A stretch of DNA of 64,000 nucleotides from Basidiobolus meristosporus CBS 931.73 (lineage: Eukaryota > Fungi > Basidiobolomycota), in contig MCFE01000011.1 of assembly GCA_002104905.1 (NCBI GenBank), forward strand, positions 1-64,000, given 5' to 3'. Positions within the stretch are counted from its first letter, which is position 1. Each line of letters opens with the position of its first letter. This document shows, one piece after another, positions 8,123 through 31,324 of the stretch. Both the position numbers and the translations under genes were made by a program. Under the pieces are notes generated by a model. The model saw nothing but the letters and a program-made list of their open reading frames with translations. It had not been told where the DNA came from and did not search any database.

Positions 8123-11100
8123 ATGGATCAAGAGTTTTCTATCACTTCCCTTTTTCCTTCCCTTAGTGGATGTAACAGACCATCGGCCGGACGACAAGTA
8201 AAATTCTTATCAGCCATTGCCCCTTCTGAAACCAGCGATGAAGTACTAAGCGAGCTTCTGGCCTCTTACGAGCACAACTCCGCTTACACATTTGTACATC
8301 TTGCATGGGGCTATTTACTCTCATGCTATCTTGGCGAGCCTAATGTTGCCTTTTGGAGTTTTCAGCCAAGCGAAGCTCCAGTACCCGCTCTTCTTCATCG
8401 ATTCAATTTTGACGAGCATACCAGTGTCCAACAACATGTACAAAAAGCTCAGGCAGGAGATGCCACTTTGTCTCCTGGGACACTGAACTTGGAGGAGGGT
8501 GTCAAGTCTGCCGATACGCTATTATGCGTTAAACAGAGCTCCGAAAGCCATTCCTGCACCGATGTATCCTCTTGGTCCACAGGCATGCCGAAGGTAAAGA
8601 ATGCTTCCTAAGTGTGCTCATGCCCATCCTTATACTAAAGCCTTTCTTTTTACATTACAGTTCTCTGTGATCATCGAAGTCGCATTCCTCGGTAAGTTGC
8701 CCACTTTCAAGGTTACCTGGAGAGAAGACATCTTCCCACAGTCCCACGGGGAAGTCCTCCTCAACCAACTCCAGACTATTTTACACGAGATGATCTCTGA
8801 TACCAACAGACTACCAAGAAACATAAGCTACCAGAAACACGATATCAGTGAATTATCCATAATTAATCCTCATCCAACGGTTTTGGATGAATCCTTACTT
8901 TTGCATGGGTTGTTCGAACAACAAGCGAAATTGAAGCCATCACACAATGCTCTTGAATTTTTGAACTCCGTCGACTACTTAGATACAGAGCTCGTGGAAT
9001 GGTCTTACGAAAACCTAAATAATAGAGCCAACCAAATGGCACGCTTACTTCTTTCACTTGGGTTGCAGCCAGACGACAGAGTCCCCATCATCCTGGATCA
9101 ATCACCATTTATGTACATTACCATATTAGCTATTCTCAAAGCTGGAGCCGCGTATGTTCCTCTGGCCACTAATTTGCCATTGGAGCGAGTAGAATTCGTA
9201 GTTCAAGACGTTTCCGCGAAAGTCATTGTGACTTCAGATTTCTATTTTGGCAAATTCAACTCGCTCCCTAGTTTCCAACATATCCATTTAATTAACCTAG
9301 ACTCCAAGGCTATCATCGACAAGATCTCCTGCAAACCCGTATCCGACCTCAACAGCACCGTGTGTGTTGGCAAACACCACTTGGCATATGTCATGTATAC
9401 CTCTGGCTCCACAGGAAAGCCGAAGGGTGTCATGATCGAACATGGGAGCGCTGTACAAAGTATACTTGCTCATCAAAAGCTGTTCCAATGGACCGACTCT
9501 TCCAAGTTCCTGCAATTTGCATCAGTGACCTTTGATGTTTCCGTTTTCGAAATCTTCTTTCCTTGGAGTATCGGTATTACTCTATGCGGTGCCTCCAGAG
9601 ATCTGATGCTGAGTAACTTGGAGGAAACCATCAACACGCTATTCATCACTCATATGGAGGCCACGCCAACCATGGCCGCTCTACTACACCGGGCCAAGTT
9701 GCCTACCGTCAATACCTTGATAACTATTGGTGAAATGCTTACCCAGCGTGTTGTAAACGAATGGTCTGACGGATTCCTGCACAACGCTTATGGTCCTACG
9801 GAAGCTGCCATCCATTGTACAATGGCTAGCAGTTTTGCTAGTAAGACCAAGCCTAGCAATATCGGCATTCCCCTCGATACCTGCTCCATTTATATCATGG
9901 GGACCGAGGATAACAGGCAGCCTCTTCCAGTCGGCTTTGTTGGAGAGTTGTACATTGGTGGAAAGCAGGTTGCCAGAGGTTACCTCAACAGAGATGATTT
10001 AACCGGCGCAGCGTTCTTTGAGGATCCGTATATTGCTGGCGGTAGAATCTACAAATCAGGGGATTTGGTTAGAATGCTTCCAGATCGTACATTCGAGTTC
10101 GTTGGCCGTGTCAATGATCAGCAGGTTAAGCTCCGCGGTCAAAGAATCGAGTTGGGCGAGATCGACTATGTCCTCGAGAACTCCCATGAAACGATTTCCG
10201 ATGTCGTCACTTTGGTCCTCAAGCATCCAAAAGCCCAAGAAAAACAGCTGATCTCGTTCATCGCTGCACCTCAAGGAGCTAACGGCGCTGATGGTGAAGT
10301 GCAGATCTATGAGTCGGATTCATTGGTTAAGAACTTGAGACTATCCTGCAGCAACGAAGCAATGCAAAAGCTGCCTCCTCATATGGTTCCTAAAATATTC
10401 ATCATCATGAACAGACTTCCTCGACTGAATTCTGGTAAAACTGATCGTAAGCAGTTACACAGTATCTTTGATGGCCTTGACTGGGATCTATTAGCCAACA
10501 GCAAGCAAAATGTTGAGGGTGATGGTAAGGAAGCTGAGCCTACGGATATCTGGTCGCCAATGCAGTTGATTGTACGCGATACCCTTCAAGAAATGTGCGA
10601 TTCAACAATATCTAGCGTTCAAGTATCCCTCTTCTCTCTCGGAATCGACTCCCTGGGCGCCATTATGTTCTGTTCTAGATTGAGGAAAAAGAATCTTCAC
10701 ATCACCGTATCGCAGCTTATGCAGAATCAGACCATTGAAAAGATCAGCCTGGTGCTGGAGAAAGATACGGTGCTTGTGAGCAGTGAGAAGGAGCGACTAG
10801 ATGCATTCCGAAATTTGGCCAGCTTATCTAGAGATCAAGTTCAAGGACAAGAGAAGTTCAAGCTGCCTCAGACCGGTTTGTTTATTGAGAGCGTTTATCC
10901 ATGCACACCCTTGCAAGAGGGTATGCTTGCCGAGACCCTGAAGTCCACGGATGGCAGTCGCTATTATAACTGGATTCTTTTGGAGATTGACAATTCAGTC
11001 AAAACTGAAACCTTGGAAGCAGCTTGGAAAAATCTGGTAGATAAAAATGAGATCCTACGTACTGGTTTTATCTCCGCTAGTGAGTGTGAGGAGACATTCT

Positions 11101-14100
11101 CACAAGCAGCGTTCCTTCAGTTGTGCTGGTCAGGCAATATGCAAGAGCAATGGAATGTTGTCGGCGTGCAGAGCGATGCAGAATTACAGGCGGTGATCAC
11201 ACAACAAAGACGTATGGCTGGCAAACTTACGTGGGAGAATATTTATTTGCCACCCAACACCTGTTCTTTAATCCGCACTGCGGACAAGGCTTGGTTGTCG
11301 ATCACGATCCATCACAGTTTGTACGATGGATGGTGCTTGCCACTCATTGTAGAGGATCTCCAGAACTATATCCTCGGGAAGGAAGTGCTCAAGCGTCCCG
11401 ATTTCCGCAATGTGGTAGAACACATTCACTGTAAAGACGCAGATGCAGACAGTGAGGCGTTCTGGAAGGAGGCACTGTCGGAGTATCGCCCTTTCGCTTT
11501 CCCAAATCTCACCGGAAAATCCAGATTTAAGGATGTTTCTGCAACACATAGTCTGGAGAAGACATTCAGCATGAAGACTAATGAAGTTGAGGCTTTGTGT
11601 CGATCCCTTAGGCTATCTCCTCAAGTAGTGGCGCAAGCAGCCTGGGCAAAGTTGCTTCGAATGTACACGAATGAGGATGATGTTGCCTTTGGCCTGGTCG
11701 TTTCAGGTCGTACAATCCCGGTAGAGGGGATTGAGCATGTGATTGGTCCCTGTATCAATACCATCCCTTGCCGCATCACCATGGACGACTTGACTCAAAC
11801 GAATGAGCAATTCTTGACCGATATCCAGGAAATGAATACCAACATGATTTCACACACTGGCTTGCCATTGCGTTCAATCAATACTCTCTTAGGGATTAAC
11901 CCGACACAGTCCCTGTTCGATACCCTGTTAATTTACCAGAAAACTTCCACCACTCCTAATGCAACCTCTGAATCTGCTCAGGAGAAGGTTAAGCTTGTAC
12001 ACTCAGATGATCTATTAGAGGTAAGCTGCCAGAATAATTCAATATGGCCTCAGGAACTAACATGGCATTTTACAAACCATAGCACTCTATCTTGGTGGAG
12101 GTAGAGCCACATGGTGATGATATCACTCTGCGTGCTGTTTGTAAAAACCATATCGTGCCTCCAGCTCACACACAAATCCTATTGGATCAATTCAGCGCAT
12201 TCATGTCGGATATTTTGAATAATCTCTCAGGACAAGTTGGAGGAGTCTTGAGAATGGCTAACGAGCAACTTTCGATTGGAAACAAAGCTGCTGAGTCTGA
12301 TGACAAGGCAAGCAGATTACTTATGCATAGCTTCGTTGAGAGGTATGCAAAAGAAACACCTGAAAAGTTTGCTTTGGAATTTGCAACTAGTATCGATTCC
12401 TCAAACGGAACCGCGGAAACGATCAAGCTTACCTACGATGTACTCAATCAAGAGGCCAACAAGATAGCCAATCTCCTACTAGATCGAGGACTCCAGCCTG
12501 AAAATATTGTCCCTATTTGCCTCGACAAGTCTCCCTTCATGTATATTGCTATCTTGGGTGTACTGAAGGCTGGAGGTGCATACGCCCCCATCGACCCCGA
12601 AATTCCAGATCTACGCAAACAATTTATCGTGTCCGATGTGGATGCAAAGGTCTTGCTCACAACAGAGAAGTATGCCACTGTCCTGGGAGAAATGCTGAGT
12701 GTCGATATTGTGGCCTTGGATAAGGAAGATTTGACTGGATACTCGTGTGCTAACCCTCGAGTCCCTCTCACTTCCTCCAATCTGGGTTATTTGTTGTATA
12801 CCTCAGGAACCACCGGAACTCCCAAGGGTGTAATGGTGGAGCATCGAAATGTAACCAGCAATCTGGATTCTATGAAGAAGATGATCTCCTGGACACCGGA
12901 GTCCAGACTATTCCAATTCACGACATTCATCTTCGATGTGTCAGTATTTGAAATGTTCTTCTCCTGGAGCCTAGGTATCACGCTTTGCTCCAGTAGCAAA
13001 GATATTATGCTCGGTGATTTGGAAGGAGTAATCAACTGCTTAAGAGTGACTCATCTGAACCTGACTCCAACCGCCAGTGGTCTTATTCATAGACCAAGAG
13101 TTCCAACCATTTCAGCTCTTATTACTGCAGGAGAGCCACTTACTCAGAGAGTTTTGGATGAATGGGCAGGCGACAATCGCCTCAGTAATGCCTACGGTCC
13201 AACAGAAACCACCAATGTTTGTACCGCCTTCACCAATGTGCAGTATGATACTAAGACCAGTAACATCGGAAGGCCACTTGCTACTTGTTCTGCTTATATC
13301 ACGAACGCTGACATGCAACCAGTGCCTATAGGTGGCATCGGAGAGTTGTGCATAGGTGGACCACAAGTAACCCGAGGCTATTGGAAGAAGCCCGACTTGA
13401 CCTCCGAGAAATTTGTTGAAATCGAGGCTTTGTCTTTTTGGAGGGTATACAGAACTGGTGATCTTGCAAGAATCCTTGCTGATGGCACCGTTGAATTCCT
13501 TGGACGCTTAGATAATCAAATCAAGTTGAATGGGTTCCGTATTGAGTTGGAAGAGATCAATTCGGTAATCGTGCAATCCCACACATCAACTAAAGACGCT
13601 GTTACCTACGCTATTCGCCGACCAGAGCACCAAAATGAGATCCTGGTCTCATTTGCATCAGTAGCTGGTGACCGTGAATACAATAGCTGCGAAATTATTG
13701 ATGTGGCAGACGAATCAGCACCAGAGGTACAGAAGATCATTCAATTGGTCTTCGAAGAAGCCAAGCGTAAGCTTCCAACGTATATGGTTCCCTCGATCGT
13801 ACTTCCTGTTTCTAAGCTTCCTTTGGGGCCTACGGGTAAAGTGAATTCCCAAACATTGAGGCAATTATATTTGGATTATCCCTTGGAGTCATTGAGTAAC
13901 TTCTACGCTGTTGAAGAAGAAGACTCGAACGTAGAGGATGATTCCATTGTGAACACGGAGATTGAAAACAAAATCCGAAACGCTATTGCCGAAACAGCAG
14001 GCCTGACCTTACCTGAAGTTAGAAGCGGCTCAAATATATTCCATCTAGGGTTAGATTCTATCAACGCAATCCAACTTTCTTCTAGATTGCGCAAGCTCAA

Positions 14101-17100
14101 TATTGATCTTACCGTTTCCGCTATTATGAACAACCCAACTCCGAGATTGATGACTCAGTTGTTCCAACAAAACTCATTGCAGGATCCTTCCGAAGTAGCT
14201 ATAGATTCATTAGCCGATACCCGTGAGTCTATGCGCGCATTCTCTCAGAGAGTCAAGTTGGATGTAACCCAGCAACTCGCCATTGACGAAGAAAAAATCG
14301 CTGCGATTCTTCCTTGTACACCTCTGCAGGAAGGTATGGTGGCCCAATCCACCAAGTACGGAAATGCCCTGTATTTCAATCACACAATATTTGAGATCAA
14401 GCTGTGGGCCCATATTTCACGCTTGCAAGAGGCCTGGAATCAAGTAGCTGAGAAAAGAGAGATCCTAAGAACTTGCTTCTGCATTACTAGCGATCATGAA
14501 TATCCCTTCGCCCAGGTTGTACTGAACGAGTGGACCCCTTCGTGGGTTTTCGAAAATCTTGCTAGTCAAGAGGCAGTTGAGAAGGCGATCGATCAGCACA
14601 TCGAGTCTGTTAATCATACCATCGAAACGAGCCGTCCTCCAGTTTGCTTCGGTGCTTTCAATGGACCAAATGGGGTTTTTGTCGTCATGTCGATGCACCA
14701 CGCTCTCTATGATGGTTGGAGTTTGCCTTTGTTATTGGAGGATGTCCAAGCCGCATACTACAAGCTCAAACTACCGATAAGACCATCATTCCATCAAGCC
14801 CTCGAATACATTCATTCGGTTGATAAGGCCGGTTCTCAAACATTTTGGAAGAATATGTTGAGCTCCTACGAGCCTGCTATGTTTCCCGACTTGACAGGAC
14901 TGGTGAACAAGCCGAACTCGGTGATCTGCAGTACAAGATCCCTGGTTAGCAAGGCCAAGATGTCAGAATTAAACTCGATCTGTAGAGCTTTACAAACAAC
15001 AGTGCTAGCTGTTGGTCAGGCTGCTTGGGCAAAATTGTTGTCCTTCTACGTGGGTGAAAATGATGTAGTATTCGGACATGTTCTCTCTGGAAGAACAATC
15101 TCGATGGAGAAAGTGGAGGATGTAATTGGCCCTTGCTTCAATACAGTCCCATGCAGAGTTGAAATCAACCCATCAAAGACCAACGAGGATCTATTCAAAT
15201 CTTTACAGAAGTACAATACGGATGTTATCCCCTACCAGCATACACCATTGAGATCCATCTTGAAGGGACTCGGTAACCTTGATGGATCCCCCTTGTTTGA
15301 TACAGTATTTTTGTACCAAAAACTCAATTCCAGTGAATCTTCACACGAACAGCTATGGGATATTATTCGTGATGAGAGCCAGTTGGAGGTATGCCTATTT
15401 ATGTGATCGTTCTTTGGCCCATTCACTAACATGCTTTAGTTTTCGGTGATGATCGAGCTTATTCCAGAAAAAGATGACAACCTGGTGCTGCGTATCACTT
15501 GTCGCAACACCGTAATGCCAGTAGCCCAGAGCGAACTACTTTTGAGCCAGCTGGATGATATCATATTAGACATCGTGCATCAACCCACTCAGTCATCCGC
15601 ATTGGTGGGCCGTACTATGCGCGAGAGTAGCTTGTCAATTAGTAATCCTCAACCCAAGTACTTTGTCAATGATAAGGAACTGCTATTGCATCAGCTATTC
15701 GAGATCAGTGTTGCCAAGAATCCCCACGCCACTGCATTAGAGTTTATGGAGGAGATGAACGCTTCCGAATCTCAAAAATGGACTTACCAACAGCTGAATG
15801 ACGAAGCCAATCGAGTAGCAAATCTGTTACTCTCTTGCGGTCTTCAGCCGGATGACGTTGTACCAATTTGCATGAACAAAGGGCCTATGACATACATCTC
15901 GATTTTGGGTGTATTGAAGGCGGGTGGTGCCTACTGTCCTGTTGATCCAGAAGCCCCGGTAAGCAGACAGCTCTTCATTATATCTGAGGTTTCGCCTCGT
16001 GTCGTGTTGACCGTCGGTAGTGATATCACCGAAGAGCTGAGACCTTATCTCTCTGAGGAGGTCAATCTAATCGATCTGAGCGCCGAGTTGATGGCAAGCC
16101 AGTCCACTGCTCAACCGCATCCTCAAGGGCTGACAGATAGGCACTTGGCTTACGTACTGTATACTTCAGGTACTACTGGAAAGCCTAAGGGTGTGATGCT
16201 CGAACATGCCAGTGCAGTGCAGAGTATTCAAACCCACCAAAGTCTATTGTGGTGGGAGGAATCCAGTAAGTTCTTGCAGTTTGCAACTTACACTTTTGAC
16301 GTGTCAATCTATGATATGTTCTTCTCTTGGACTGTCGGAATCTGTCTTTGTTCTGCCTCCAAGAAACTTTTGCTTGGGCAGCTGACGGAGCTGATCAACG
16401 CCATGGAGATTACCCATCTGGATTTGACTCCTACGGTTGCTGGATCTCTCTCTCGTAAGGACGTCCCAAGCATCAAGTCATTGTATTGTATTGGTGAGGC
16501 CCTTACCCAGAGAATAGTGAACGACTGGGCTGATGACGGTTGTCTGGTTAACTCATACGGACCAACTGAAGCGACCATTGCTTGTACTATGAGACGAGTT
16601 ACTGGCGAACATAAGGCTAGTAATATTGGGCTTCCATTCCAGACATGCTCGGCCTATGTTCTGTCCAAACAGGGTCACCAGATACAGCCCTCCGGTTGCT
16701 TAGGAGAGCTTTGTATAGGAGGGCCCCAACTTGCCAGAGGATACCTTGGTAATGTGACCTTGACTGCGGAGAAGTTTATGCGTGTACCAGGAATCGATGG
16801 ATTGCTATATCGTACTGGTGATATTGTCAGACTACTTTGCGATGGAACATTCGAATACATGGGACGTATGGATGATCAGGTCAAGCTAAACGGTTTCCGT
16901 ATTGAGTTGGATGAAATCAATACTGTCATTGCTGGATCTCATCAATCGGTTGAAGACGTGATCACCCTTGTTATCCGCCATCCTCAACTGGCACGAGGCC
17001 AACTTGTCTCCTTTCTCGCCACACAAGCTCGTGACGATGGTGACTTCTCACCGGAGTTGATAACTGACCCAACCTTGAAACAAGAGTTGATCCAGGCTTC

Positions 17101-20100
17101 GTTGAGCCAGGCAAGAAGCACTCTTCCTGCATACATGGTTCCCGGCATCATACTACCCATCAACAAGATTCCTGTTGGAAGTGCAGGAAAGGTGGATCGC
17201 AAGAGACTCATGGCAGTGTTTACAGGCATGAGCAGTGTCTCCCTCCAAACGTACCTTGATCCTTTAGGTGAGCTGGACACTGATGACAGCAGCTGGAGTG
17301 AGATTGAACGCAAGATTCGAGACATCTTGGCAGAGGTCACACAGACCTCTTCAGATTTGATTGGCAAGAGATCTTCGATCTTCCAACTTGGACTTGATTC
17401 CATCAGCGCTATCCAGTTGTCGGCTAAATTACGCGAGAGAGGCATTAATATCTCAATTATTGATATTATGAGGAATCCTTCGGTCCAATTAATGGGCGAG
17501 TGCTTGCAAAATCAACTTGGTGCTGGCGTCGCTAACGAGGAAGAAATTGCTAGTCAAACCCGCTCCATCATTAAAGGGTTTGCTGCTAAGATCGAACCTC
17601 AGCTGGGCGCACAATACGAGGGAGATGTGGTGGCCGTCTACCCATGTACTCCTTTGCAGGAAGGGATGATAGCACAAACATTAGGGCTTGGTGGAGCATA
17701 CTTCAACCATATCATTTACGAACTCATTCCTACTATTGACATTTCACGCTTAGAACAGGCATGGCTGAAGGTCATCGAAAGCAACGAAATCTTGAGAACA
17801 AGCTTCTTCAACACCGATGATACTGAGTTTGTCTACGCTCAAATTGTTCACAAGAAGGCTTACATGCCATGGACAGTGAGAGAGGTACAAGATTTCGAGG
17901 AGGTTCAATCGATATCCGATGAGTACATGCAAAAAGCATGGAAACAAACTGAGAATTTGCAGCGTCCACCTATATCATTTACCGTGTTCAAAGGATCCGA
18001 GAACTCATGGTTACTTGTATCAATGCACCATGCCATATACGATGGCTGGTCATTGCCATTGATTGTAAAGGATGTATTCGATAGCTACAACGAAAAGCTT
18101 TCACTGAGACCTCAATTCTCTCAAGCTTTGGAATCCATCCTTTCATACGATAAGGCCGCGGCCGAGGAATTCTGGAAGCACCATCTGAATGATTATTCTA
18201 GTGCGATGTTCCCCAATATTACCAATTCCAGGAAGCAGATTTCCGGAAGCCATTTGGTGTCAAAAGTAGCTACACTCAAGCTAGTCGATATTGAGCATGC
18301 CTGCCAATCACTGGGAACCACTGTGCAGGCAGTAGCTCAAGCGGCTTGGGCAAAGATTCTCTCTGCGTACATGGATATGGATGATGTCATATTCGGCCAC
18401 GTTATTTCAGGAAGAACTATCAGCAACACCGATTTAACCGAGATAATCGGACCCTGCTTTAACACCATTCCTTGCCGTGTAACAGTTAAGGAGGTGGAGA
18501 CGAATCTCGAGCTCATTCAAAGAATCCACGACGACAACATTCAAGCTCTTTATCACCAATGCACCCCATTGAGATCGATTCAAAAGTGGCTTGAGGTGCC
18601 GAATGGATCTTCTCTTTTTGATACTATCTTTATTTTCCAAAAAACCGAGAAGGGTGAAGCAGGAGATAACGCGCCAATCTGGCTGGAGAAAGAGAACAGA
18701 GGAGAGGTTGAGGTAAGTAGATATACGAATGTTGATTTGACTTCTACATGGCTAATTTAAACTGTTCAGTATGCGCTATCCATTGAATTGGAGCCTACAG
18801 AGAATGGTGCTCTTAGCATCAGTCTGGTGTGCAAAAACGCTACTCTTTCGAAGGAACAATCCCAGATACTCTTGGAGCAATTCGAAGGCTTGTTTATGGA
18901 CTTACTCCAAAAACCGCACAGCCGAGTCAAGGACTACAATGAAGATGTTTTGCCTTCACAACTTCTTTCAATTTGTAATCCTTCTCCCGTAGTGTATGAT
19001 GTTGGCGCACGTCGCTTTATGCACAGTTGGGTCGAGGACTTTGCCATCAGCAATAGCGATAAAATCGCCCTAGAATTTGCTACCGAAATTTATGCTTCCG
19101 GTGCTGAGACAACTCAGTGGACTTTCGAACAGCTAAACGGTGAAGCTAATCGCGTAGCTCACTATCTCATCACTTCCGGAATTGAAATTGAACAACCAGT
19201 ACCCGTTTGTATCCCTAGATCACCATTGATGTATGCTACAATCCTTGGTGTTACTAAAGCAGGAGGTGCCTACGTCCCAGTTGATCCAGATGCACCCTCC
19301 GATCGTAAGAACTTCATCATCGAGGATACTAGGGCTAAACTAGTCCTAACTGTTGAAAGCCTTATTGACCAGTTCGTCGGTAATGGTGTTAATGCTATTG
19401 CACTTGATACCAGCGACTCCCTGGCAAGGCAGCCTACGACGAACCTTGATCTTGAGAGTCTGCAACCCTCAAACTTGGCATATATCCTGTATACTTCCGG
19501 TACTACTGGCAAACCTAAAGGTGTACTAGTAGAACATACAAACGTGGTCCACAGTATAACGGCATTCAAGAAAATGATCAAGATGACGCCAGCTTCCAAG
19601 TTCTTACAATTTGCTTCTTGCGGATTTGATGTTTCGATTTTCGAGATGTTTTTGTCTTGGAGCGTAGGAATCTGTGTTTGTGCCGCTAGCAAGGATCTTA
19701 TATTGAGGGATATTGAGTTGATGATCAGCTCAATGGGTATTACTCATGCCGATCTTACTCCCAGTATGGCCGTCTTAGTTCGTCGTTCTCACGTGCCCAC
19801 CCTCCAATGCTTGGTAACTGGTGGTGAAGCATTAACTCAGCATGTTCTTGATGAGTGGGCTGGTAATGGCTTGTATAATGCATATGGCCCTACCGAGGCC
19901 ACCATTGGTTGTACAATGCTTTGTAATGTTACCAAGGATGCAAAGGCTAGCAATATTGGCAGAGTATTTGAAAATAGTACTGGCTATGTCATGTCTGCTT
20001 CAGGTCGATTCGAACCAGTTCTCCGTGGTTCTCCTGGCGAGCTTTGCATTGGTGGGCCTCTAGTTACCAGAGGGTACCTCAATAGACCGGAACTTACTTC

Positions 20101-23100
20101 GGAGAAGTTTGTTAGCTGGCCCAAGGGCGGCTCTCAAGTTCTGTACAGAACTGGTGATCTTGTTCGTCTCACCGCCGATAATTCCATAGAGTTCTTGGGA
20201 AGAGCTGATAGCCAGGTTAAGATCAACGGTATTCGGATTGAGCTAGACGAAATCAACAACACCCTCAGAGCAGTCGAAGAAAGCGTTCAGAGCGTTTTCA
20301 CCATCCTTGCTCAACACCCTGAGCAATTGAAGAAGGAGCTTGTTTCTTTCGTCGTTTTGCCTGATCTTAAGGCGGCATCTAGCGGTGGTGTAACCATCAC
20401 AGAACTTTCTGATAGTGAAATTACCAGAATCAGGAATATTGCCAGTGCGCTTATTCAAGAGGCCAGACGTATGCTACCTGCTTACATGGTACCCCACCAT
20501 ATCCTCCCTATTGCGACCCTTCCTTTAGGAAATACCGGCAAGGCAGATGAGAAGAAGCTGATCAACATGTACAAGAGCACCGAATTGCAGGCCTTGCAAT
20601 TGTTACACGCAGGAACAACTTTGGTTACTAGGCCATGGACTGGAACTGAAGAAATCATCCGCAAAATTATTGTACAGATTTCGCCCGTACCCGAAAGTAA
20701 CATCAATCAAGGCTCATCTATATTCCAGCTAGGATTGGATTCCCTCAGCGCAATCCTTCTCTCGTCGAAGCTGAGAAAACAAGGCTTTGAAATATCTGTT
20801 TCGCAGATCATGCAATACCCTGTGATCGAACAGATGGCGCACTGTTTAGACTCTGAATCGTCTGAATCTAGCAATGAGCAGAGTTTGATTGAAGAAGCGC
20901 GAGTTGCCATCAAAGAGTTTGAAAATTCAAATAGAGTTCTTGTCGCAAACCAAATTGGCATATTAGAAAGTGACATATCAGCAATCTACCCATGCTCACC
21001 TTTACAAGAAGGTATGATTGCGCAATTCCTGAAATCGGACAAGGCTGTGTACCTCAATCACATCCTGCTTGATTTGGAATCGAAAATCGACTTGGAGAAG
21101 CTACGTGAAGCATGGAGATGTGTCGTTCGCACACATGATATTCTGAGGACCTGCTTTTGCCTGCTAGATGGCCAAAAGTATATCCAGGTGGTATTGTACG
21201 ACTCCGATAAATATGAAATGTCGTGGGAAGTTAAGTCAGCCAACAGTGAAGACGAGTTAATCACGCTGATTGAAGAAACTGAAGCCGAGATTTCCAAAGA
21301 ATTGACTCTCCAGAGACCACCAATCCGCCTCACTGTATGCCATTGCGCCACCAGAGTTTGTCTTTTGATTTCCATCCACCATTCTCTGTATGATGGATGG
21401 AGTTTACCTCTAATTCTTGATGACGTTTACCGCTGTTACCGTGGCTTCTCTCTACCTGTCAGGCCACAATTTGGAAACTTCATTGATTATGTCGCTGCAA
21501 GAGATATGGACCTTTCAAAGCAATATTGGAGAAAGGCACTTGCGGATTCAACTCCCACTAGTTTCCCTGAACTGACAGGAACCAGAGGTATCCAGAACGC
21601 GGCAAGCCACGTTGCTTCACTCACATCGAGACTTAAGAACAGCGAGATCGAAGCAGCTTGCCATAATATGGGAACTACAGTACTTGCTCTAGGTCAGGCA
21701 GCTTGGGCGAAATTGCTTTCATATTACGTTGGAGAATCAGAGGTTGTCTTCGGGCATGTGGTTTCTGGTAGAACTATACCTCTTGACGGTGTTGAAGACA
21801 TCGTTGGTCCATGCTTCAACACTATTCCTTGTCGTGTAGAGGTTAACGAAGGTGTGACCAATGTTGAGCTTCTGCAAGCTATTCAACAGGAGAATGCACG
21901 CGCTCTTGCTTATCAGCATACTCCTTTAAGATCGATTTACAGATGGATTAATCGTGTGGATGATCAGCCCCTTTTCGATACGCTATTCTTGTATCAAAAG
22001 AATCCTTCCGAATCTGGGAACGTGGAGGAGAGACTATGGAAGGTTGTCGATGGTAAAGCTCAAATAGATGTAAGTGTCAAATATTCCTCTATGTAGTCCG
22101 GTTCGCCTCCTGACCGTTTTTCTAGTATTCGATCTCCATTGAATTGGAAGCCGGCTCAACAGACGAATTTGTTATTCACGCAGCTTGTAGAGATATCGTC
22201 GTACCTCCAGGCCATTCCAAGATATTGCTGAGACAGCTTGATCAAATTTTGGTGGAAATAGTAACTAATCCACAAAGGCAGGTCATGCAACTAGACATTG
22301 AACCTAGTTGTATGTCGATAATGAACCCGGAACCTCAAATTTTCGATCCTACAAACACTGGGTTGATGCACACCTTGTTTGAGAAGAATGCCGCTGACAT
22401 TCCCGAGAAGATTGCTTTAGAGTGGGTTCTAGACTTTGATGATGATGATAAGCCAGTGGTTGAAAGTTGGAGCTTTGAGTCTTTCAATCGCGAAGCAAAC
22501 AGAATCGCGCATCTTATCTTATCGAAGAGTTCTTCCAAATGTGTAGTTCCGGTTTGCATCAAGAAGTCACCTCTCATGTACATTGCCATATTGGCAGTAT
22601 TGAAGAGTGGAAATGCATATGTCCCTGTCGATCCTGAATTACCGGTGGACCGTATCCTGTATATGATTGCGAATGTTGATGCCCCAGTAGTCCTCACTAC
22701 CCAAGACATTGCCGTTTCACTTAACGAAGGGTCAGGCAAGGGCCCGGCAATACTACCCCTCGATATTTTGGGCAGCGATTTAGCCAGTCAATCCACTTCC
22801 AACCCAGATGTCATTCTCACAGCCAATGATCTAGCCTATGTCCTATTTACCTCAGGAACCACTGGCCTGCCTAAAGGTGTTATGATCGAACATGGAAGTG
22901 TACGTGAAAGTATTGCCGCCTTTAGCAGTATCTTGAAGCATGGTTCGAATGTGAAGTTCTTGCAATTCGCTAGCTTCTCGTTCGACGTATCTATTTGTGA
23001 GATATTCCTGTCCCTGAGTCGTGGCTACACATTATGCTCCGCGGCTAAAGACTTCTTGCTCAGCAATCTCGAGAGAATCATCCAGAAAATGGAGGTTACG

Positions 23101-26100
23101 AATGTCGCTCTTACGCCAAGTGTAGTCAGTATTATCAATCGGAAGAATGTCCCATCAGTGAGGGTGTTTGTTGCTGGTGGAGAAAGCCTTACTCAACGCG
23201 TTTTGGATGAATGGACCGATGGAGATGTTATTCTTCAAAATGCATATGGTCCTACTGAGACCACTATTGGCTGTACTTTGAACCAACGAGTTACTCGTCA
23301 TTCCAAGCCAAGTAATATTGGTGGTACTCTACCTAGTTGCTCCGCATTTGTATTGTCGTCTACACTTCAATTAGTGCCACTAGGTGGCATAGGAGAATTG
23401 TGCATTGGTGGCAAGCATGTTGCTAGGGGCTATCTTAAACGACCGGACTTGACAGTTGAGAAGTTTATTACCATGGAGATATTAGGAAGATCGGAAAGAA
23501 TCTATAGAACTGGTGATCTTGTTAGAATTCTGCATGACGGATCTATCGATTTTGTTGGGCGAATGGACGATCAAGTCAAACTCAACGGGCTTCGTATTGA
23601 GCTTGAGGAGATTAATCATGTCATTCTTCAAGCAAGCGACTGTATTGATGATGTTGTAACCCTAGTGATCAAGCATCCTGAACAACAAAAAGCCCAGCTT
23701 GTGGCTTTCATTGCCACTAGCCTTATCGCTGATAATTCGGAAGATCTTACTGTATTAACTGGATCTGCGGTAGTTGATGAGCTCAAGCCCATCATTAGAG
23801 CAGCTTTGGATGCAGCCGCAAGAAAACTCCCAATGTACATGGTGCCAAGCCACGTTTGCTTGGTGAACAAGATGCCCCTTGGTACAACCGGAAAGGTCAA
23901 TCGAAAATTACTTACTCAAAAGTATCAAGGTCTGGATGAATCAGTCTTCTTGGGTAGTGATATTACTCAAGATGACTACCAGTCCTGGGCGAAGCAAGAG
24001 CAGAAGATTAGTGAGGCCATTTCAGAGGTTGCCAATGTTCCTCTAAATGAAATTGGACGTCACTCTTCCATTTTCCAGCTTGGTCTCGATTCGATCAGTG
24101 CGATTAAGTTGTCGGCCAAACTCAAGGATAGGGGAATAATTTTATCGGTCTCTGACATCATGAAGTACCCTACCGTTAGCCGCATGTTCAACTACCTTGA
24201 AGAGAATTCTGATGTGGTATTTGAAGATGTAGAAGAGACATTGCAAAAAACTAGAGTTCTTTTCCAAGAACTTGAGGATGAAGTTAGATCATCAATCACC
24301 GAATCCTTGAAGATTTCTGATGATGAAATCCTGGCGATTTATCCCTGTACACCAATGCAAGAGGGAATGATCTCGCACACACTACAGTCAAGTGGAAAGC
24401 TCTATTTTAATCACACAGTCTTTGATTTGAAGTCATTTGTTGATGTCAATGCTTTGAAGGAAGCCTGGATGTCGTTAATTCAAAAGAATGATATTCTCCG
24501 AACCAGCTTCTTCCCTTGCAACCACACTTCATTCAGCTATCTTCAAGTAGTTAATCGTGACGTTTGGATGCCTTGGTCTGAGATAGAGGTTGATGAGAAC
24601 TGTGATATGAATCAGTTAGTAGAGGAGCATATCGAAACAGCTGTCAAGGAAACCCAGAACATGCAACGTCCCCCAATAGCGTTTAGCGTTGTCAAGAAGC
24701 CAGAGCAAACTCTACTAATTATGTCGTTGCACCACGCACTTTATGATGGATGGAGTTTGCCGTTAATGCTACAGGATGTTCACACACTCTATTTCGGAGA
24801 ACCAGTACCCGAACGCCCTGCCTATAAGAATATGGTTGAATATATTGTGTCGCGACCAGAGAGTGAAGCAAACGCTTATTGGTCACAAGCTCTAGAAGAT
24901 TGTAATGTATCGACATTCCCATCTCAAGGTGATATCTTAGATTCATCCAGTGCCTTTATCGTCAACATGGATGAGATCTCTTCAAGTATGTCTGTTCAAG
25001 ATATTGAGGCTATATGCCAATCTCTGGATATCACTATGCAATCAGTAGGCCAAGCTTCATGGGGAAGGTTATTAGCTTGCTATCTTGGTGAAAGCGATGT
25101 CACGTTTGGACGAGTTGTATCTGGAAGAACCGTACCAGTAGAAAACGCCGAAGCGATAATGGGACCTTCTTTCAATACTATTCCATGCAGAGTCACTGTT
25201 GATCGCTTTGATAATAATGCAGATCTCACTCGTGGGCTTCACCAGATGAATGTTGAAAGTATCAAATACCAGCATACTCCGCTAAGAACAATTCTAAAGC
25301 AAGCCAACAAATCGACCAATGGACAAAAACTCTTTGATACATTGTTCTTGTATCAAAAGGGCGAAGGTACCAGTGGTGATAATGGCCGTATACTGTGGGA
25401 TATCGTAGACGGAAAAGCAGAGATTGAAGTAAGTACTTTTGGCATCGATCACCATAAGTACATGTATTCTAATATTGAGTTTAGTTTTCTGTTAGTGTTG
25501 AAATTGAACCATTAGGCGATCAGCTAATGCTACGCGCTGCTTGTAAGAATAGCGTAATGACCAAGCATCAATTGAGAATGATGCTTGAGCAATTGGATTC
25601 CCTAATGGTAGACTTGTTGGAGAATCCTGCGGGTAGCCCCGAATCATTCACCGAGTTACCTCAGAGGTTGATGTCTCGAGGAAACCCTAACCCAGAATCC
25701 CTTGGCACTGGACCTGTATCACTCCTGCATCAATTTGTCGAGAAACACGCCGAAGAAACCCCCAACAAGATTGCTTTCGAATTTGTTCACTCGATATCTG
25801 ATTCCCATATTGACGTTAGCAAATTCACCTACGCTGAATTTAATCGCAGAGCAAATCAAGTTGCCAATTTCCTCTCAAGTAGGAATGTCAAGCCAGAAAC
25901 CATCATTCCACTGTGTTTCGAGAAGTCTATCCTCATGTACATGAGTATTATAGGAGTTCTGAAGGCAGGTTGCGCTTACGTACCAATAGATCCTAAGGCG
26001 CCCTCAGACAGAAAACGGTACATCATACAAGAGGTTGAAGCCTGTGTAGTGTTAACATCGAAATCTTTATCATCTGGCCTTATCGTCGAGAATGAGGATC

Positions 26101-29089
26101 CTGTCGAAGTGATTTGTCTCGATGAAGTCAACCTCTCGACTCAGATGGATAGTAATCCTCCCGTTACCATTTCTCCGAGCAGTTTGGCATACGTTCTCTA
26201 CACCTCAGGAACCACAGGTGTACCGAAGGGTGTTATGATCGAACATCATAGTGTTGTTCAATTCTTTGCCTCTACTCACCGACTCTTACCATGGGAGTCT
26301 GACTCTAGATTCTTACAAAACGCGAGCTATTACTTTGACGTCTCGATATTCGAGATGTTCTTCACTTGGAGTGTTGGAATAACTATCATATCATCCACCA
26401 ACGATAATTTGCTAAGCAATTTAGAGCTGGTGATCAATTCATCAAGAATCACCCATGTTGCCATGACTCCAACAGTGGCATCAATGTTCCATCGCAGCAA
26501 CGTACCAACTGTTAAATACTTAGTTGCTGGTGGAGAGATGTTGACACAGCAAGTTATTGAAGAATGGGGCGACGGTTGCTCTCTGTTCAACGCCTATGGG
26601 CCGACAGAGATCACTATTGGATGCAGTCTGCTATGTAACATGGATAAGACCATGAAGCCCAGTAATATTGGAAGTATATTACATACTTGCTCATGCTACG
26701 TCGTATCTCCTAAGTCGCAAGTGCTTCCTCGTGGCAGTGTAGGAGAGCTTTGCATTGGTGGCCCCCAGGTTGCTCGTGGATATCTGAAACGCCAAGATCT
26801 TACGTCACAGAAGTTTATTGCAATCCCAGGCATCAATGAGCGGATCTATCGCACTGGCGATCTTGTGCGTATGCTACAGGATGGCTCAATTGAATTCATT
26901 GGAAGAATTGACGATCAAGTGAAGCTGAACGGACTACGAATTGAACTCAGCGAAATCAGTACAGTCATATCCAAATCGAGCGATCTCATCGAGGGCGTGG
27001 TGACCTATGTTCTCAAAAACCAATGGCAAAGTAGAGATCAACTGGTGTCGTTTATTGCATGCTCTGCTGGAAGTTCTTCAGAGTCATTGGCATTACTAAG
27101 CGAGGAATCAGATGTCGCTATTGCTAAGACCATAGTCAAGCTAGCGCATACGGAGGCAACGAAGAAGCTACCATTATACATGGTACCTAGTTTGATTATA
27201 CCGATCAACAAACTTCCTCGTGGCAACACCAATAAGACCGATCGTAAGGTGCTGGAGCAATTATATAATAGCTTAAGCTTGGAAACGATCGAACGTATCT
27301 CTTATATGGAGGATGATGAGACGGAAGAAAGCGTTCTATCTGAAGTAGAGAGCACCATTAGAGACGTACTGGCTGAAGTCGGCGAAATCTCGCCCAACAA
27401 GATCAAGGGTACTACATCTATTTTCCATCTTGGTCTGGATTCCATTAGTGCGATCCGCGTATCTTCCAAATTACGCTCTATCGGATTAAATCTTACTGTC
27501 GCTGATATTCTTCAACAACTTACCGTCAAAAATATGGCCCGCCTGGTGAATCAAGAACAAGATAATTCGCGCACAAACTCAATTTCTGGAGCATCGAAGA
27601 AAGCTGTTCAGCACTTAAGTACTGAATTCTTTGAATCGATCCCGGCATTATTGAATATTCCTGATGCTCCTATCGAGACCGTTGCACCTTGTTCACCGGC
27701 TCAAATCTTCACAATTTCTTCGTGGCAAAATTCGAAAAAGGCAAACTTTATGTCGTACTTTGCTTTCAAGAGTTCGGAGAGACTAGATTCAACCAAGCTA
27801 CAATCCGCCTGGCTGTCATTACTTAAGCAACACAGCATTCTTAGAACTGCCTTTGTTGCTACATCTGACTTCAAGATGCCCTATGTCCAAGTAGTTTTGG
27901 AACAGCCAGTTCTTGATTGGACCGTTGACGAATTGGACAAGGAATTAGATTTGGACTTTATTAAGGATACCATCGCTAGACGAGCTTCAGTCCCTGTTCG
28001 CCTTGATCAACCTCCAGTTCATGCTCATTGCATTAGGTTCTTGAGTAGCACCGTTTTAGTAGTCGGGCTTCATCATGCCCTTTATGACGGCTGGAGTTTG
28101 CCGTTGCTATTGACTGATCTCGAGAGTGCCTATCATGACATCAATCATTCGACTAACAGTCCAGGTTTCTCTGGATTCCTAGACTATGTATTTTCGCAAG
28201 AAGAGGAATCCCAGACTAAATACTGGAAGAAATACTTGCAGGATTCCGTGCCTTTGATGTTCCCAGTAATGAATCCGAACACGCAAACGGAGTCGCGTAC
28301 GTTTGTGCTCATTTCAGATGCTTTGAACAACGTCTCTCGATATGAAGAATTATGCCGTGAGCATCAAACAACAATGCAGGCTATCTTCTTAGCTGCATGG
28401 GCAACCCTCCAATGCGATATGCTGGAGTCGGGCGATTCACTCTTTGGACTCTATCATTCGGGCCGCTCCGCCCCTGTTGACGGAATTAGCATGCTTGCTG
28501 CACCTTGTGTCAATATGCTACCTCTATATGTCAAGAATGCCAAGACAATGGGATTGGTCGAACTTTCTCTCAAAATCCAAGAGGATTTGGCTCTTCAGAC
28601 ACCTTATCAACAGGCATTTATTCACGATATTCAACGTGTTGTTGGATACCAGGGCAAACCATTACTTAACACCTACGTGAACTACCTTAAGTTCTCTGAT
28701 GAGGGCTCATTAACTGGGATGTTTGATGTCCTTGATGTAAGTTGATCCATTTATGTTTATAAGCCACCACAGGTACTAATTGTGCTATGTTAGCTCCTTT
28801 CTTCAAGTAACCAGATCAAGGCGATTCAACAAGCAGCTCATTTGAATGATAATGACATATCACTGAATCCAGCAGCCTCCTCGATTAAGGTACAGATCCT
28901 TCAGCACATATTTCTATGATTCATTCTAACAATTTTTGTCTATAGAGTGACCTTGATATCGAAATCTCAGTCAGAGGAGATCAGGCATGGGTAGGCATCT
29001 TCTGTCAACCTAATATTCTGTCAGAAGCCCAAGCAACGGATATGATCCATAAGCTTTGCAACATTGTGCGTGACGCTTTTCCCCTCTGA
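8123..29089 (+). CDS. Hexamodular nonribosomal peptide synthetase, ferrichrome-type siderophore synthetase family (SidC/Nps2/Sib1-like); partial C-(A-T-C)x6; about 6,834 aa, 9 exons
   Basis: Exons 8123-8593, 8661-12020, 12083-15388, 15440-18712, 18770-22069, 22126-25428, 25485-28736, 28794-28889, 28946-29089. All are joined by phase-0 GT..AG introns with CTAAC/CTAAT-like branch sites, and the frame is preserved. Six A domains ((Y/F)TSG(S/T)TGxPKG, N(A/S)YGPTE, Y(R/K)(S/T)GD, A10 Lys), six T domains (LG(I/L)DS) and six C domains (HH(A/S)(L/I)YDGW). C-terminus IKSDLDIEISVRGDQAWVGIF...FPL*, no TE or R domain. Confidence 0.93.
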
Positions 29090-30181
29090 TCATCATTAGA
29101 CTGTGTCCAGAGATCGTATAGGACCATCCTCATGTATCAAGCAATTTAAATAAAAACAGTTCAAACACAGATCGTGAGCTTGAATTATTTGTGCCCCTTG
29201 GTGGTTTTAGGGGAAAACCCCGATTGATTGTAGATCAATTTGAAAATTGGCCTTCAATAACCCGAAATATATAAAGCCACTCACGCCCGTTACTACTAAT
29301 GGCACCTACCCGCAAATCGGCAATGTGACTACTTGCATATACGTAAATAAAAACGAAATTTGAGTAAATTTTGAACTTTCAGAGAAATCGTTAGGGCCGA
29401 ACCTGAATAGTTCCATCTATATTTACATCATCATCCTTTGCAGATAAGCTTAATAGTGAGTATACTTCGGAGTAAGCTAATTGACATCACTAATTTATGC
29501 ATAAATGTTTGTAATTTCTAGAACCAGATCAAAAAACTGATGATCTTTGAAACTGGCTGACAATGTGAGTGTACGTTACCTCTGATGAACTAATCACAGG
29601 GCCTAATAACTGACTAATCGCAACGAATCATTACAATTTGCGAAGACGCGAATTTCCCATTGAATGAAATAATGATGACAATGGCCGCTTCAATGCATTG
29701 GCTGTCGATCTCCATTGCCTCTTCCATGACTTTGCTAATGCCTTATATTGATGCGTCGTTCCGCAAACGATGTGTCTCTAGTAATTAATATTCCAACGCC
29801 GTTGCTGGCGGGAATAGATTCCCAATGTCCCCGATTGGCTATAGACCTCGTCACTGATGATTAACCACTAATTATGAGGTGTCAGAGTTTTCATGGGTTT
29901 ATCAGTGCATAGCATCATATATGCTGCGAATTCATTGCATAGTAATTTCTTCAACTTGATGAGTTTGAAATTTTGTTTGTTTTGGTTTAGCATAACCGGT
30001 CTGGGACCGAAATCATCGACAAGCAGCATGCTACGAGCACTATCCTTGAAACCCCAATGATATATATGACACGTAAGTTGTGTTGAAAGAAAAGTCATCA
30101 GTATTGCGGTGCCATGAAGCCTTATTTAAGTTCAAAAATAATCACACATTCTACCAGCTCACTTTTACTCTGCTTCCTACT

Positions 30182-31324
30182 ATGAAATCATTCCTGAATA
30201 TATCGATTGTGGTGTCAGCTCTGGCTTCCGTTACCCAGAGTATCCCCCTCAGCTCCGGAATGCTACAGCAATCACTTTTCCAACCCCTACAGTGGACGTT
30301 CGATTCTATCTTTGACGAGCCGCCGAAAGGCAAAAAATCCATATTAGATACCATTGTCTGGGACCCTCAATTCAAACGCTTGGCAGACATCGTTCTTAAT
30401 GATGATGGACTCAAGAAGATCCTAGAAAATCCCGATGCGCAACTTACTCTATTCGCACCCATAAACGAGGCCTTTATTCATTACGATGACCACCCTCATG
30501 GCAAAGAGCCTAGCAAGGAAGATATTTACAATTGGATCGTTTACCACACCTTGCCTGACGCGCTGAGCTCCAAAAAAATCGCAAAGTCCCATGTGCTTGG
30601 TACTCAACTCAATTCGCCGGAGTTGAATGACCAACCAACCCCTGTGCGAATTGGACATTGGAAAGGCGATACTTATATTAACTTTTCCAAAGTGACAAAG
30701 GCAGATATCCATGCGACCAATGGTGTGGTTCATGCCATCAATCATGTTCTTATTCCTCCACCTTCAATCTTCGACGGCCTTCATTTGATCCCTACTGGAT
30801 TTAGTACACTTACATCTGCCATCCATGTTAGTGGTTATGGAGGCGATTTCGAGGGCTTCAAAGGAGTAACGGTGTTTGCACCCACCAACAGAGCTTTCCG
30901 TAAGTTGGGCTACAAAAATCTTGCCGAACTATTCGCACCCGACAATCGTGATACTTTAAGGAAGCTTGTGGAGTATCACGTATCATCCGAGCTAGTTTAT
31001 ACTAACGAGATATTCAAAAATCGCGGAAACCATGCAGCGCTAAGAATTCCTACCAACCTTGGAGATGGGTATGAGTTGGACATCAAAGGCGAATCTGCCA
31101 AAGGCGGCCAATACAAAATCACTGTCAACAACGCACGTGTACTGGTCTATGACGGAATAGCCAAGAACGGTGTTGTTCATGTAGTTGATACTGTTCTTGT
31201 CCCACCTCATCATGATGAAAATGTTAGACGCTTATTAACCGAAGTTGAAGACGAAAGCTTATGGGCTGATGAGCAAACTGTCAATGACCATTTCAACTCT
31301 CTTCCTAAGAATTGGTATATGTAG
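30182..31324 (+). CDS. Secreted fasciclin (FAS1) domain protein, two FAS1 repeats, 380 aa
   Basis: Signal-peptide-like MKSFLNISIVVSALASVTQS; FAS1 motifs TLFAPINEAF...ATNGVVHAINHVLIPP and TVFAPTNRAF...AKNGVVHVVDTVLVPP; single exon, ATG at 30182. Confidence 0.9.
   Translation: MKSFLNISIVVSALASVTQSIPLSSGMLQQSLFQPLQWTFDSIFDEPPKGKKSILDTIVWDPQFKRLADIVLNDDGLKKILENPDAQLTLFAPINEAFIHYDDHPHGKEPSKEDIYNWIVYHTLPDALSSKKIAKSHVLGTQLNSPELNDQPTPVRIGHWKGDTYINFSKVTKADIHATNGVVHAINHVLIPPPSIFDGLHLIPTGFSTLTSAIHVSGYGGDFEGFKGVTVFAPTNRAFRKLGYKNLAELFAPDNRDTLRKLVEYHVSSELVYTNEIFKNRGNHAALRIPTNLGDGYELDIKGESAKGGQYKITVNNARVLVYDGIAKNGVVHVVDTVLVPPHHDENVRRLLTEVEDESLWADEQTVNDHFNSLPKNWYM

Follow-up and report, generated by a model that had tools for sequence, protein, structure and literature searches.

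Ferrichrome synthetases are a textbook example of non-linear nonribosomal peptide synthetase (NRPS) logic, and the proposal that they derive from a hexamodular, colinear ancestor (Schwecke 2006; Bushley, Ripoll and Turgeon 2008) has so far rested on trees of the surviving domains; a survey of the chytrid and zygomycete genomes then at hand yielded no candidate (Bushley, Ripoll and Turgeon 2008). In this work, we analyzed a NRPS gene of the early-diverging zygomycete (Zoopagomycota) Basidiobolus meristosporus CBS 931.73 that raises the question of whether this six-module form still exists. The gene lies at positions 8123-29089 of the window, by which we mean the whole stretch of DNA analyzed (64,000 nucleotides, positions 1 to 64,000 of contig MCFE01000011.1). 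It shows, within a known enzyme family, the new six-module architecture that had been predicted; the protein is already public and its layout had not been interpreted. We consider it probable that it is the single SID-clade ferrichrome synthetase of B. meristosporus, that it works colinearly and has the old six-module layout, and that the losses seen in Dikarya and chytrids came later.

The plus strand between 8084 and 28742 contains seven long open stretches separated by short gaps, six of which gave one AMP-binding (E 1e-64 to 1e-74), one PP-binding and one Condensation hit each. The gaps are bounded by GT..AG and contain CTAAC boxes that resemble branch points. Joining the stretches yields a spliced model of nine exons and eight phase-0 introns of 51-67 nt, open throughout its 6834 codons. 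Its translation agrees at every residue with ORY07062.1 / A0A1Y1Z9X3, a deposited protein that bears the annotation "amino acid adenylation". This bears out a first-pass annotation of the locus, which had read one spliced gene with six complete modules, each made up of an adenylation (A), a thiolation (T) and a condensation (C) domain, between exactly these ends. The annotation was also right that the catalytic motifs are kept in all modules: TSGxTGxPK, YGPTE, LG[IL]DS[LI] and HH[AS][LI]YDG occur six times each, and the A10 lysine (Lys517) is present at its alignment column in six of the six A domains. With six T domains, six full C domains and a complete A domain in every module, the enzyme fits none of the six types (Types I-VI) of the non-linear layout, in which three or four A domains are combined with A-less T-C units. 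The exon units are only 33-43% identical to one another, which excludes a recent amplification and a collapsed or expanded assembly, as had also been argued at first sight; besides, one 28-kb contig from the source DNA run showed zero differences across the 6 kb compared. Module 1 is preceded by C0, what is left of a seventh condensation domain (its C-terminal half), which a profile of C1-C6 recovers with an E value of 1e-11 (hmmsearch, profile positions 237-300 and 376-487). An upstream exon completing its N-terminal half was searched for and not found, and a C0-like remnant also heads several chytrid homologues.

When module 3 was used as a query against 1.84 billion representative proteins, the top matches were NRPSs of Chytridiomycota with five to six modules, followed by NPS2-type ferrichrome synthetases from Pezizomycetes, Dothideomycetes, Xylona, Neolecta, Lipomyces, Protomyces and Saitoella. 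A tree of 55 A domains was then inferred with IQ-TREE (LG+C20, posterior mean site frequency model), the NPS2 type being represented by proteins of Xylona, Macroventuria, Ascobolus and Neolecta. The A domains of Basidiobolus, the chytrids, NPS2 and SidC form a clade with support of 100/100 relative to the NRPSs of Sphaerosporella, Chytriomyces, Penicillium and Pseudomonas, and the C domains likewise form a ferrichrome-family clade apart from other six- and seven-module fungal and bacterial NRPSs. Within it, the six Basidiobolus A domains take six different positions. A1 groups with the A1 domains of NPS2, SidC and the chytrids (96/93), A2 with NPS2 A2 (99/92), and A3 with NPS2 A3 and SidC A2 (84/94), while A4, A5 and A6 belong to one superclade (97/94) together with NPS2 A4 and SidC A3, which are known domains for acyl-hydroxyornithine (AHO). 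In that superclade, A4 joins NPS2 A4 and SidC A3 (94/95) with A5 and A6 outside, and A5 joins a separate set of chytrid domains (99/96), a type of A domain that no Dikarya synthetase in the set has kept.

In the C-domain tree, C1 pairs with NPS2 C1 (100/99), C2 with NPS2 C2 (83/80), and C6 falls in the terminal, releasing/cyclising C clade (100/100), which also holds NPS2 C6, SidC C5 and the last C domains of the chytrid enzymes. C3, C4 and C5 each group with a different chytrid clade (88/98, 96/77 and 96/99, respectively). Thus, the mapping of C1-C6 onto the known C clades that had been suggested as a check is firm for C1 and C6 and moderate for C2; C3-C5 have no supported NPS2 match, and none of them is contradicted. 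Under the site-heterogeneous model, the Basidiobolus C domains include no sister pair. A pairing of C2 with C4 in a FastTree analysis (support 97), which would have hinted at internal duplication, vanished under that model. Altogether, orthology with NPS2 runs in order over A1-A4, C1 and C6, with C2 as a moderate match, and since SidC domains lie inside the same clades, the gene may branch before the split of NPS2 and SidC. Structural comparison was uninformative for membership, as the nearest A domains of solved structure are those of bacterial LgrA, TycA and GrsA, with SidN (3ITE) close behind, and the ESM Atlas returned generic NRPS clusters only.

These trees also bear on whether the six A domains could be a secondary condition, that is, whether modules 5 and 6 of an NPS2-like ancestor, with four A domains and a T-C-T-C tail, were refilled with A domains through internal duplication. 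The common superclade of A4-A6, their near-identical pocket codes and the placement of A6 only in a polytomy would fit such a history, but the approximately unbiased (AU) test rejects Basidiobolus {A4,A5,A6} as a single clade (delta lnL 115, p 3e-73), so that A5 and A6 do not behave as the lineage-specific copies of A4 that would have spoken against the first reading of the locus. Furthermore, the A4 clade has members from Dikarya, chytrids and Basidiobolus and excludes A5 and A6, which places the split of A4, A5 and A6 before the separation of these lineages. The remains of A domains in other fungi point in the same direction: Saitoella keeps a full A6, for which the AU test rejects derivation from the A4 of the same enzyme (p 2e-5), Lipomyces starkeyi keeps an A6 fragment of 88 residues between C5 and T6, and Dinochytrium keeps A4-A6. 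We therefore regard a regain of A5 and A6 as very improbable. On this evidence, the observation of a six-module gene is confirmed and its ferrichrome-type interpretation is largely supported, its domains lying inside the ferrichrome synthetase clade and its A5 and A6 outside the A4 clade.

According to the preferred reading, the lineages of modules 1-6 would have split before Dikarya and chytrids diverged; Dikarya would later have deleted A5 and usually A6, and some chytrids A2 or A3. Saitoella and Lipomyces, both early-branching Ascomycota, appear to represent stages in the reduction to a T-C-T-C tail. In Type V enzymes, only about 25-35 residues lie between C4 and T5, as in a clean deletion of A5, and Dinochytrium has no A3 and only a degenerate fragment of A2. 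Among the proteins examined, the Basidiobolus enzyme is the only one with six orthologous modules in NPS2 order. The annotated gene model of Saitoella complicata has its last T-C split off by annotation.

A second line of evidence on the history of the modules comes from the introns. Introns 1-6 and 8 fall on a single alignment column of C0, C1-C5 and C6, directly before the motif F/Y-S-V-x-I-E-L, so that each large exon consists of the tail of one C domain, an A domain, a T domain and about 80% of the C domain that follows, counted from its start. Introns of phase 0 occupy this site also in five C domains of a Spizellomyces punctatus gene, in several of a Powellomyces hirtus gene and in two of the Saitoella complicata gene. 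The recurrence of one intron site throughout the C domains of the enzyme, and again in its homologues from chytrids and Saitoella, points to tandem duplication of a unit that already bore the intron, which would be the simplest reading. The finding of a periodic C-domain intron common to Basidiobolus, chytrids and Saitoella is new here. The only departure from the pattern is a mini-exon encoding 32 residues between two phase-0 introns, an insertion relative to C1-C5 that is confined to the terminal C6.

The substrates were approached through the pocket residues. GrsA positions were mapped by means of motif anchors, a procedure that reproduces Table 2 of Bushley for NPS2 (Macroventuria, Xylona) and SidC. 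The A1 code, DVFEIIAIHK, equals the published code of Sib1 A1, which is of Gly type and must load Gly. The A2 code, DVFNIAANVK, compares with DVFSVAANVK (Xylona) and DVFSVAGNIK (Macroventuria) of NPS2 A2 and is predicted to select Ser, and that of A3, DVYDYISIAK, compares with DMYDYISFCK of NPS2 A3 and is predicted to select Gly. A4 (DVFDVGAIGK), A5 (DVCAVGAIGK) and A6 (DVFAVGAIGK) resemble the AHO code of NPS2 A4 (DVLDIGGIGK), and all three have the hallmarks of an AHO pocket (DV.D/x.G.IGK type, Gly301, Gly331). The codes therefore divide three and three, Gly/Ser/Gly-like followed by three AHO-like. In the mechanism that we propose, the enzyme would be a colinear assembly line with one module per residue, in which the small residues Gly, Ser or Ala, and Gly would be taken up by modules 1-3, one N5-acyl-N5-hydroxy-L-ornithine would be loaded by each of modules 4-6, and the terminal C6 would cyclise the hexapeptide to a hydroxamate of the ferricrocin/ferrichrome type. 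The predicted product is a ferricrocin/ferrichrome-like cyclo-(Gly, Ser/Ala, Gly, AHO3).

A non-classical product, with another acyl group or other small residues, a linear peptide, or one made with skipping or iteration of modules, seems unlikely to us. It gains some weight from the codes of A5 and A6, which have Ala at position 278 where the AHO domains of NPS2 have Asp, from the weakness of code-based prediction in fungi, and from a related six-module enzyme of Spizellomyces that combines one small-residue module with five AHO-like ones. The orthology of A1-A4 to NPS2, the position of C6 in the terminal C clade and a promoter motif for an iron repressor, in common with loci for hydroxamate precursor synthesis, argue for the classical type.

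Beside the related NRPS gene of both Spizellomyces punctatus and Powellomyces hirtus lies a gene encoding a Lys_Orn_oxgnase (SidA-type) domain fused to an Acetyltransf_8 domain, and this arrangement of chytrid five- to six-module NRPS genes beside a fused SidA-acyltransferase gene is new here. B. meristosporus has such a fusion gene (K493DRAFT_293676) on another contig than the NRPS, and on a further contig a monooxygenase gene is directly followed by an acetyltransferase gene; at both SidA-type loci there is a divergent pairing with an ABC transporter gene. The fusion protein has 700-800 aa, and its 120 best matches include fusions only from chytrids, Basidiobolus and two JGI metagenome proteins, the Dikarya matches among those listed having the monooxygenase domain alone. 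In Saitoella, the NRPS gene adjoins sidA and a gene for a major facilitator superfamily (MFS) transporter.

Upstream of the NRPS start codon at 8123 there are five ATCWGATAA sites, and these are all the matches in the window, where about 2.3 would be expected per 64 kb (Poisson P ~3e-9 for five in 1.45 kb). This extended GATA motif is over-represented in the SreA regulon of A. fumigatus and matches mapped Urbs1 and Fep1 sites (Schrettl 2008, PMC2610380). Five sites are likewise present in each of the two intergenic regions between the ABC transporter and SidA-type genes of B. meristosporus (L003:8210-10000 and L004:7930-10000), and three between sidA and the NRPS gene of Saitoella. The common clusters tie the unlinked NRPS and SidA genes into one putative iron regulon. 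The hydroxamate precursor would be supplied by unlinked genes for a fused ornithine N5-monooxygenase and acyltransferase, and the NRPS and precursor genes would be under a SreA-type GATA iron repressor; for the NRPS itself, we infer such regulation as putative from the promoter motifs. At locus L004, four more sites lie near the downstream Pyr_redox gene. The ABC protein encoded at the left end of the window was considered as a siderophore exporter and rejected, as tblastn against the ABC transporters adjacent to the SidA genes gave nothing at E <= 1e-3. This reading frame is the start of a soluble ABCF-like ABC ATPase, whose N-terminus runs straight into the ATPase/Walker A region and which continues off the window.

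The possibility that the gene is silent or decaying and yields no product is barely credible: its open frame of 20.5 kb has every catalytic motif intact, the promoter motif cluster is conserved, and in a relative with about 12% divergence the frame is kept and the changes are mostly at third positions. The latter is a contig of another Basidiobolus sample covering positions 23200-29099, with 693 differences in about 5900 positions (~12%), of which 31 of the 39 listed lie at third codon positions by our own count; indels are limited to two that compensate each other at a distance of five bases and to three bases within intron 8. The frame-neutral or intronic indels together with the third-position bias indicate purifying selection over modules 5-6. 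The divergent sample carries the species label of the source, which, given a DNA divergence of about 12%, probably covers more than one species.

Several points weigh against the preferred reading and have to be set beside this evidence. Splicing and expression are predicted from the deposited gene model and from conservation. The trees represent known ferrichrome synthetases by NPS2-type proteins and SidC, to the exclusion of SidE, Sid2, Fer3 and Sib1; A6 forms part of a polytomy that also includes Saitoella A6 and the chytrid terminal-module domains, and neither A6 nor C3-C5 has a supported pairing with an NPS2 clade. The 10-residue code is a poor predictor for fungal A domains (Bushley 2008), and the substrate calls would stand solely on similarity to homologous ferrichrome domains, the assignment of the product to this gene being likewise a prediction from sequence. 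Although the strain is CAS-positive (chrome azurol S assay; Tabima 2020), this assay is non-specific and not assignable to this gene, and Basidiobolus has many other predicted siderophore NRPSs (Tabima 2020). No ornithine monooxygenase (sidA) or acyltransferase gene was found in the 64-kb window, either by tblastn with two chytrid fusion proteins (best E 0.26) or by Pfam on the larger open reading frames flanking the NRPS. In addition, the carboxylate siderophore rhizoferrin is reportedly made by Basidiobolus.

A further objection concerns descent. When A1, C1, A4 and the terminal C domain were concatenated, the resulting tree united Basidiobolus with Gaertneriomyces, Powellomyces, Spizellomyces and Rhizophlyctis (97/97) and left Dinochytrium and Cladochytrium outside; monophyly of the chytrids is rejected by the AU test (p 0.006). 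Such nesting among chytrid copies does not fit simple vertical descent, and could be explained by an ancient transfer from a chytrid, by hidden paralogy or by long-branch effects. Consequently, the chemistry could be as we propose while the gene, and perhaps the SidA-acyltransferase fusion gene with it, was acquired from a Spizellomycetales/Rhizophlyctidales-like chytrid, or is one of two ancient paralogues that was kept; we regard this as possible but doubtful. Besides the nesting, such an origin finds support in the fusion gene, limited by name to chytrids and Basidiobolus among the 120 best matches, in the fact that no other zygomycete was seen among the close homologues, and in the known uptake of foreign genes by Basidiobolus (Tabima 2020). 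However, several chytrids (Spizellomyces, Powellomyces) have two paralogues, and hidden paralogy could give the same tree; Dinochytrium, Cladochytrium and Dikarya have long branches, and the group tested was chosen once the single-domain trees had been seen; and the set contains no chytrid enzyme whose modules match the six of Basidiobolus by orthology and order. With chytrid genes sharing no more than about 40% identity with it, any transfer would be ancient. Under a transfer and a kept paralogue alike, the "ancestral" layout would document the chytrid gene lineage and not Zoopagomycota. The nesting leaves the age of the six module lineages intact and weakens vertical inheritance by Basidiobolus itself. 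The first-pass claim that the gene keeps the ancestral six-module state is thus upheld as to its old module lineages and weakened as to vertical descent, and the search for orthologues in early-diverging fungi that it had suggested led to related chytrid genes of five to six modules. Regarding other copies in the genome, no close Basidiobolus paralogue was seen among the best 120 proteins of 1200-3800 aa with a two-module query, and the whole-length query returned only this gene, so that the 44 expanded "SIDE" domains of Tabima are not closely related to it.

As for earlier work, Tabima 2020 counted A domains and has one SID-clade entry per Basidiobolus isolate, with no mention of ferrichrome or of a six-module layout, and our full-text literature search, which excluded subscription journals, returned no prior link of ferrichrome synthetases to chytrids or Basidiobolus. 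An intact six-module member makes the ancestor hypothesis experimental, since colinear and iterative enzymes can be compared, domains swapped and the loss of A5 and A6 traced. It would also extend NRPS hydroxamate siderophores to chytrids and a zygomycete, where carboxylate siderophores have been taken as the rule. Siderophores are relevant, too, to how Basidiobolus handles iron as a gut-associated fungus that is occasionally pathogenic. The intron at the module boundary is, moreover, a rare physical trace of NRPS module multiplication in eukaryotes. It is tempting to go further and to see in this gene a living copy of the pre-Dikarya synthetase, in the chytrid genes partial copies, and in the periodic intron a fossil of tandem duplication with its boundaries inside the C domain, the pathway, the SidA-acyltransferase fusion and SreA-type control then dating from near the fungal root; we give this broader view about an even chance. 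A near-root origin, if true, would overturn the view of early-diverging fungi as lacking a hydroxamate ferrichrome pathway.

Genes flanking the NRPS encode a cyclin, a fasciclin-domain protein, a dual-specificity phosphatase and, in pieces, a sugar/MFS transporter, and no siderophore role is obvious for any of them. Coordinates are collected in Table 1.

Table 1 Coordinates of the NRPS gene of B. meristosporus CBS 931.73, its parts, its surroundings and the fused precursor genes (window positions unless a locus is given).
Feature	Position	Strand	Remarks
NRPS gene	8123..29089	+	9 exons, 6834 aa, architecture dC0-(A-T-C)x6
Exons	8123-8593, 8661-12020, 12083-15388, 15440-18712, 18770-22069, 22126-25428, 25485-28736, 28794-28889, 28946-29089	+	GT..AG joining; 28794-28889 is the mini-exon
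C0	8123..8909	+	C-terminal-half remnant of condensation domain, aa 1-240; without HHxxxDG; interrupted by intron 1
Module 1	8916..12337	+	A1 8916-10505, T1 10536-10760, C1 10761-12337
Module 2	12338..15694	+	A2 12338-13912, T2 13943-14167, C2 14168-15694
Module 3	15695..19024	+	A3 15695-17254, T3 17285-17509, C3 17510-19024
Module 4	19025..22380	+	A4 19025-20596, T4 20627-20851, C4 20852-22380
Module 5	22381..25739	+	A5 22381-23946, T5 23977-24201, C5 24202-25739
Module 6	25740..29086	+	A6 25740-27296, T6 27327-27551, terminal C6 27552-29086
Intron 1	8594..8660	+	67 nt, phase 0; conserved C-domain site, in C0
Intron 2	12021..12082	+	62 nt, phase 0; conserved site in C1, alignment column 452
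Intron 3	15389..15439	+	51 nt, phase 0; conserved site in C2
Intron 4	18713..18769	+	57 nt, phase 0; conserved site in C3
Intron 5	22070..22125	+	56 nt, phase 0; conserved site in C4
Intron 6	25429..25484	+	56 nt, phase 0; conserved site in C5
Intron 7	28737..28793	+	57 nt, phase 0; C6-specific; precedes mini-exon
Intron 8	28890..28945	+	56 nt, phase 0; conserved site in C6, column 452
Promoter region, five ATCWGATAA	6680..8012		sites 6680+, 7440-, 7718+, 7920-, 8004-; upstream of ATG 8123
Fused monooxygenase-Acetyltransf_8 gene	L001:6449-8548		Spizellomyces punctatus
Fused monooxygenase-Acetyltransf_8 gene	L002:4446-6584		Powellomyces hirtus
Fused monooxygenase-Acetyltransf_8 gene	L003:10001-12272		B. 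meristosporus
ABCF-like ABC ATPase, start	1-714	-	continues off window
Fasciclin-domain protein	30077-31321	+	
Dual-specificity phosphatase	39697-40482	-	
Sugar/MFS transporter	56449-58192	+	in pieces
Cyclin	58560-59600	-	

Among known systems, the ferrichrome (ferricrocin) synthetases of the type of NPS2 from Cochliobolus heterostrophus (Type V, four A-T-C modules followed by T-C-T-C) have A1-A4 orthologous to those of Basidiobolus and arranged alike; C1, C2 and the terminal C match, and the pocket codes of NPS2 are of the same type as those of Basidiobolus A1-A4 (Gly, Ser, Gly and AHO). NPS2 lacks A5 and A6, however, so that one AHO-loading A domain must serve three T domains, whereas in Basidiobolus each T domain has an A domain of its own. 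The Basidiobolus gene further differs from NPS2 in its N-terminal C remnant, its module-periodic intron and the absence of sidA linkage in the window. Saitoella coloradoensis BFZ64108.1 (A1-A4, T5-C5, A6-T6-C6) retains an ancient A6 whose code, DVFDVGAIGK, equals that of Basidiobolus A4; Saitoella also has the phase-0 C-domain intron in two modules, an adjoining sidA and ATCWGATAA sites, but lacks A5 and is therefore intermediate and not fully colinear. The SidC of Aspergillus and the Fer3 of Ustilago (NPS1/SidC, Type II), as well as Sib1 of S. pombe, belong to the same family and are non-linear with three A domains; A1, A2 and A3 of SidC fall in the A1, A3 and A4 clades, and inter-modular loading has been shown for SidC (Jenner 2023).

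The chytrid NRPSs are the closest sequences overall and have in common with the Basidiobolus gene the C0 remnant and the intron site, and they adjoin the SidA-acyltransferase fusion. Six modules are present in Spizellomyces (KNC98875.1/TPX70384.1) and Rhizophlyctis (KAJ3033198.1), five in Gaertneriomyces and Phlyctochytrium, and mixed layouts with A-less T-C units in Nowakowskiella, Powellomyces, Dinochytrium and Cladochytrium. The Spizellomyces enzyme (7021 aa, a C remnant plus six modules) has, in this order, A domains of A3, A4 and A5 type followed by three A6-like ones, and is not colinear with that of Basidiobolus; Gaertneriomyces lacks module 3, and no chytrid examined has six orthologous modules in NPS2 order. 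With five AHO-type A domains, three of them with the identical code DVFDVGAIGK, the six-module Spizellomyces enzyme may make a different hydroxamate peptide.

Outside the ferrichrome clade, six complete A-T-C modules are found in NRPSs of Sphaerosporella brunnea, Rhizina undulata and Penicillium nalgiovense. A parallel in layout is Sid1 of Acremonium persicinum, the AS2488059/ASP2397 synthetase, which, like the Basidiobolus enzyme, has six A domains, one per residue and three of them for AHO. It has been called a six-A "contender" for the ancestral gene and yet lies phylogenetically outside the ferrichrome family (Jenner 2023), and, according to Asai 2022 as cited in Jenner 2023, it is of different evolutionary origin. 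The first-pass statement that characterised synthetases have only three to four A domains is to be corrected in that Sid1, a ferrichrome-type NRPS with six of them, had been described, although reportedly outside the family. The backbone residues of Sid1 are Asn, Val and Phe.

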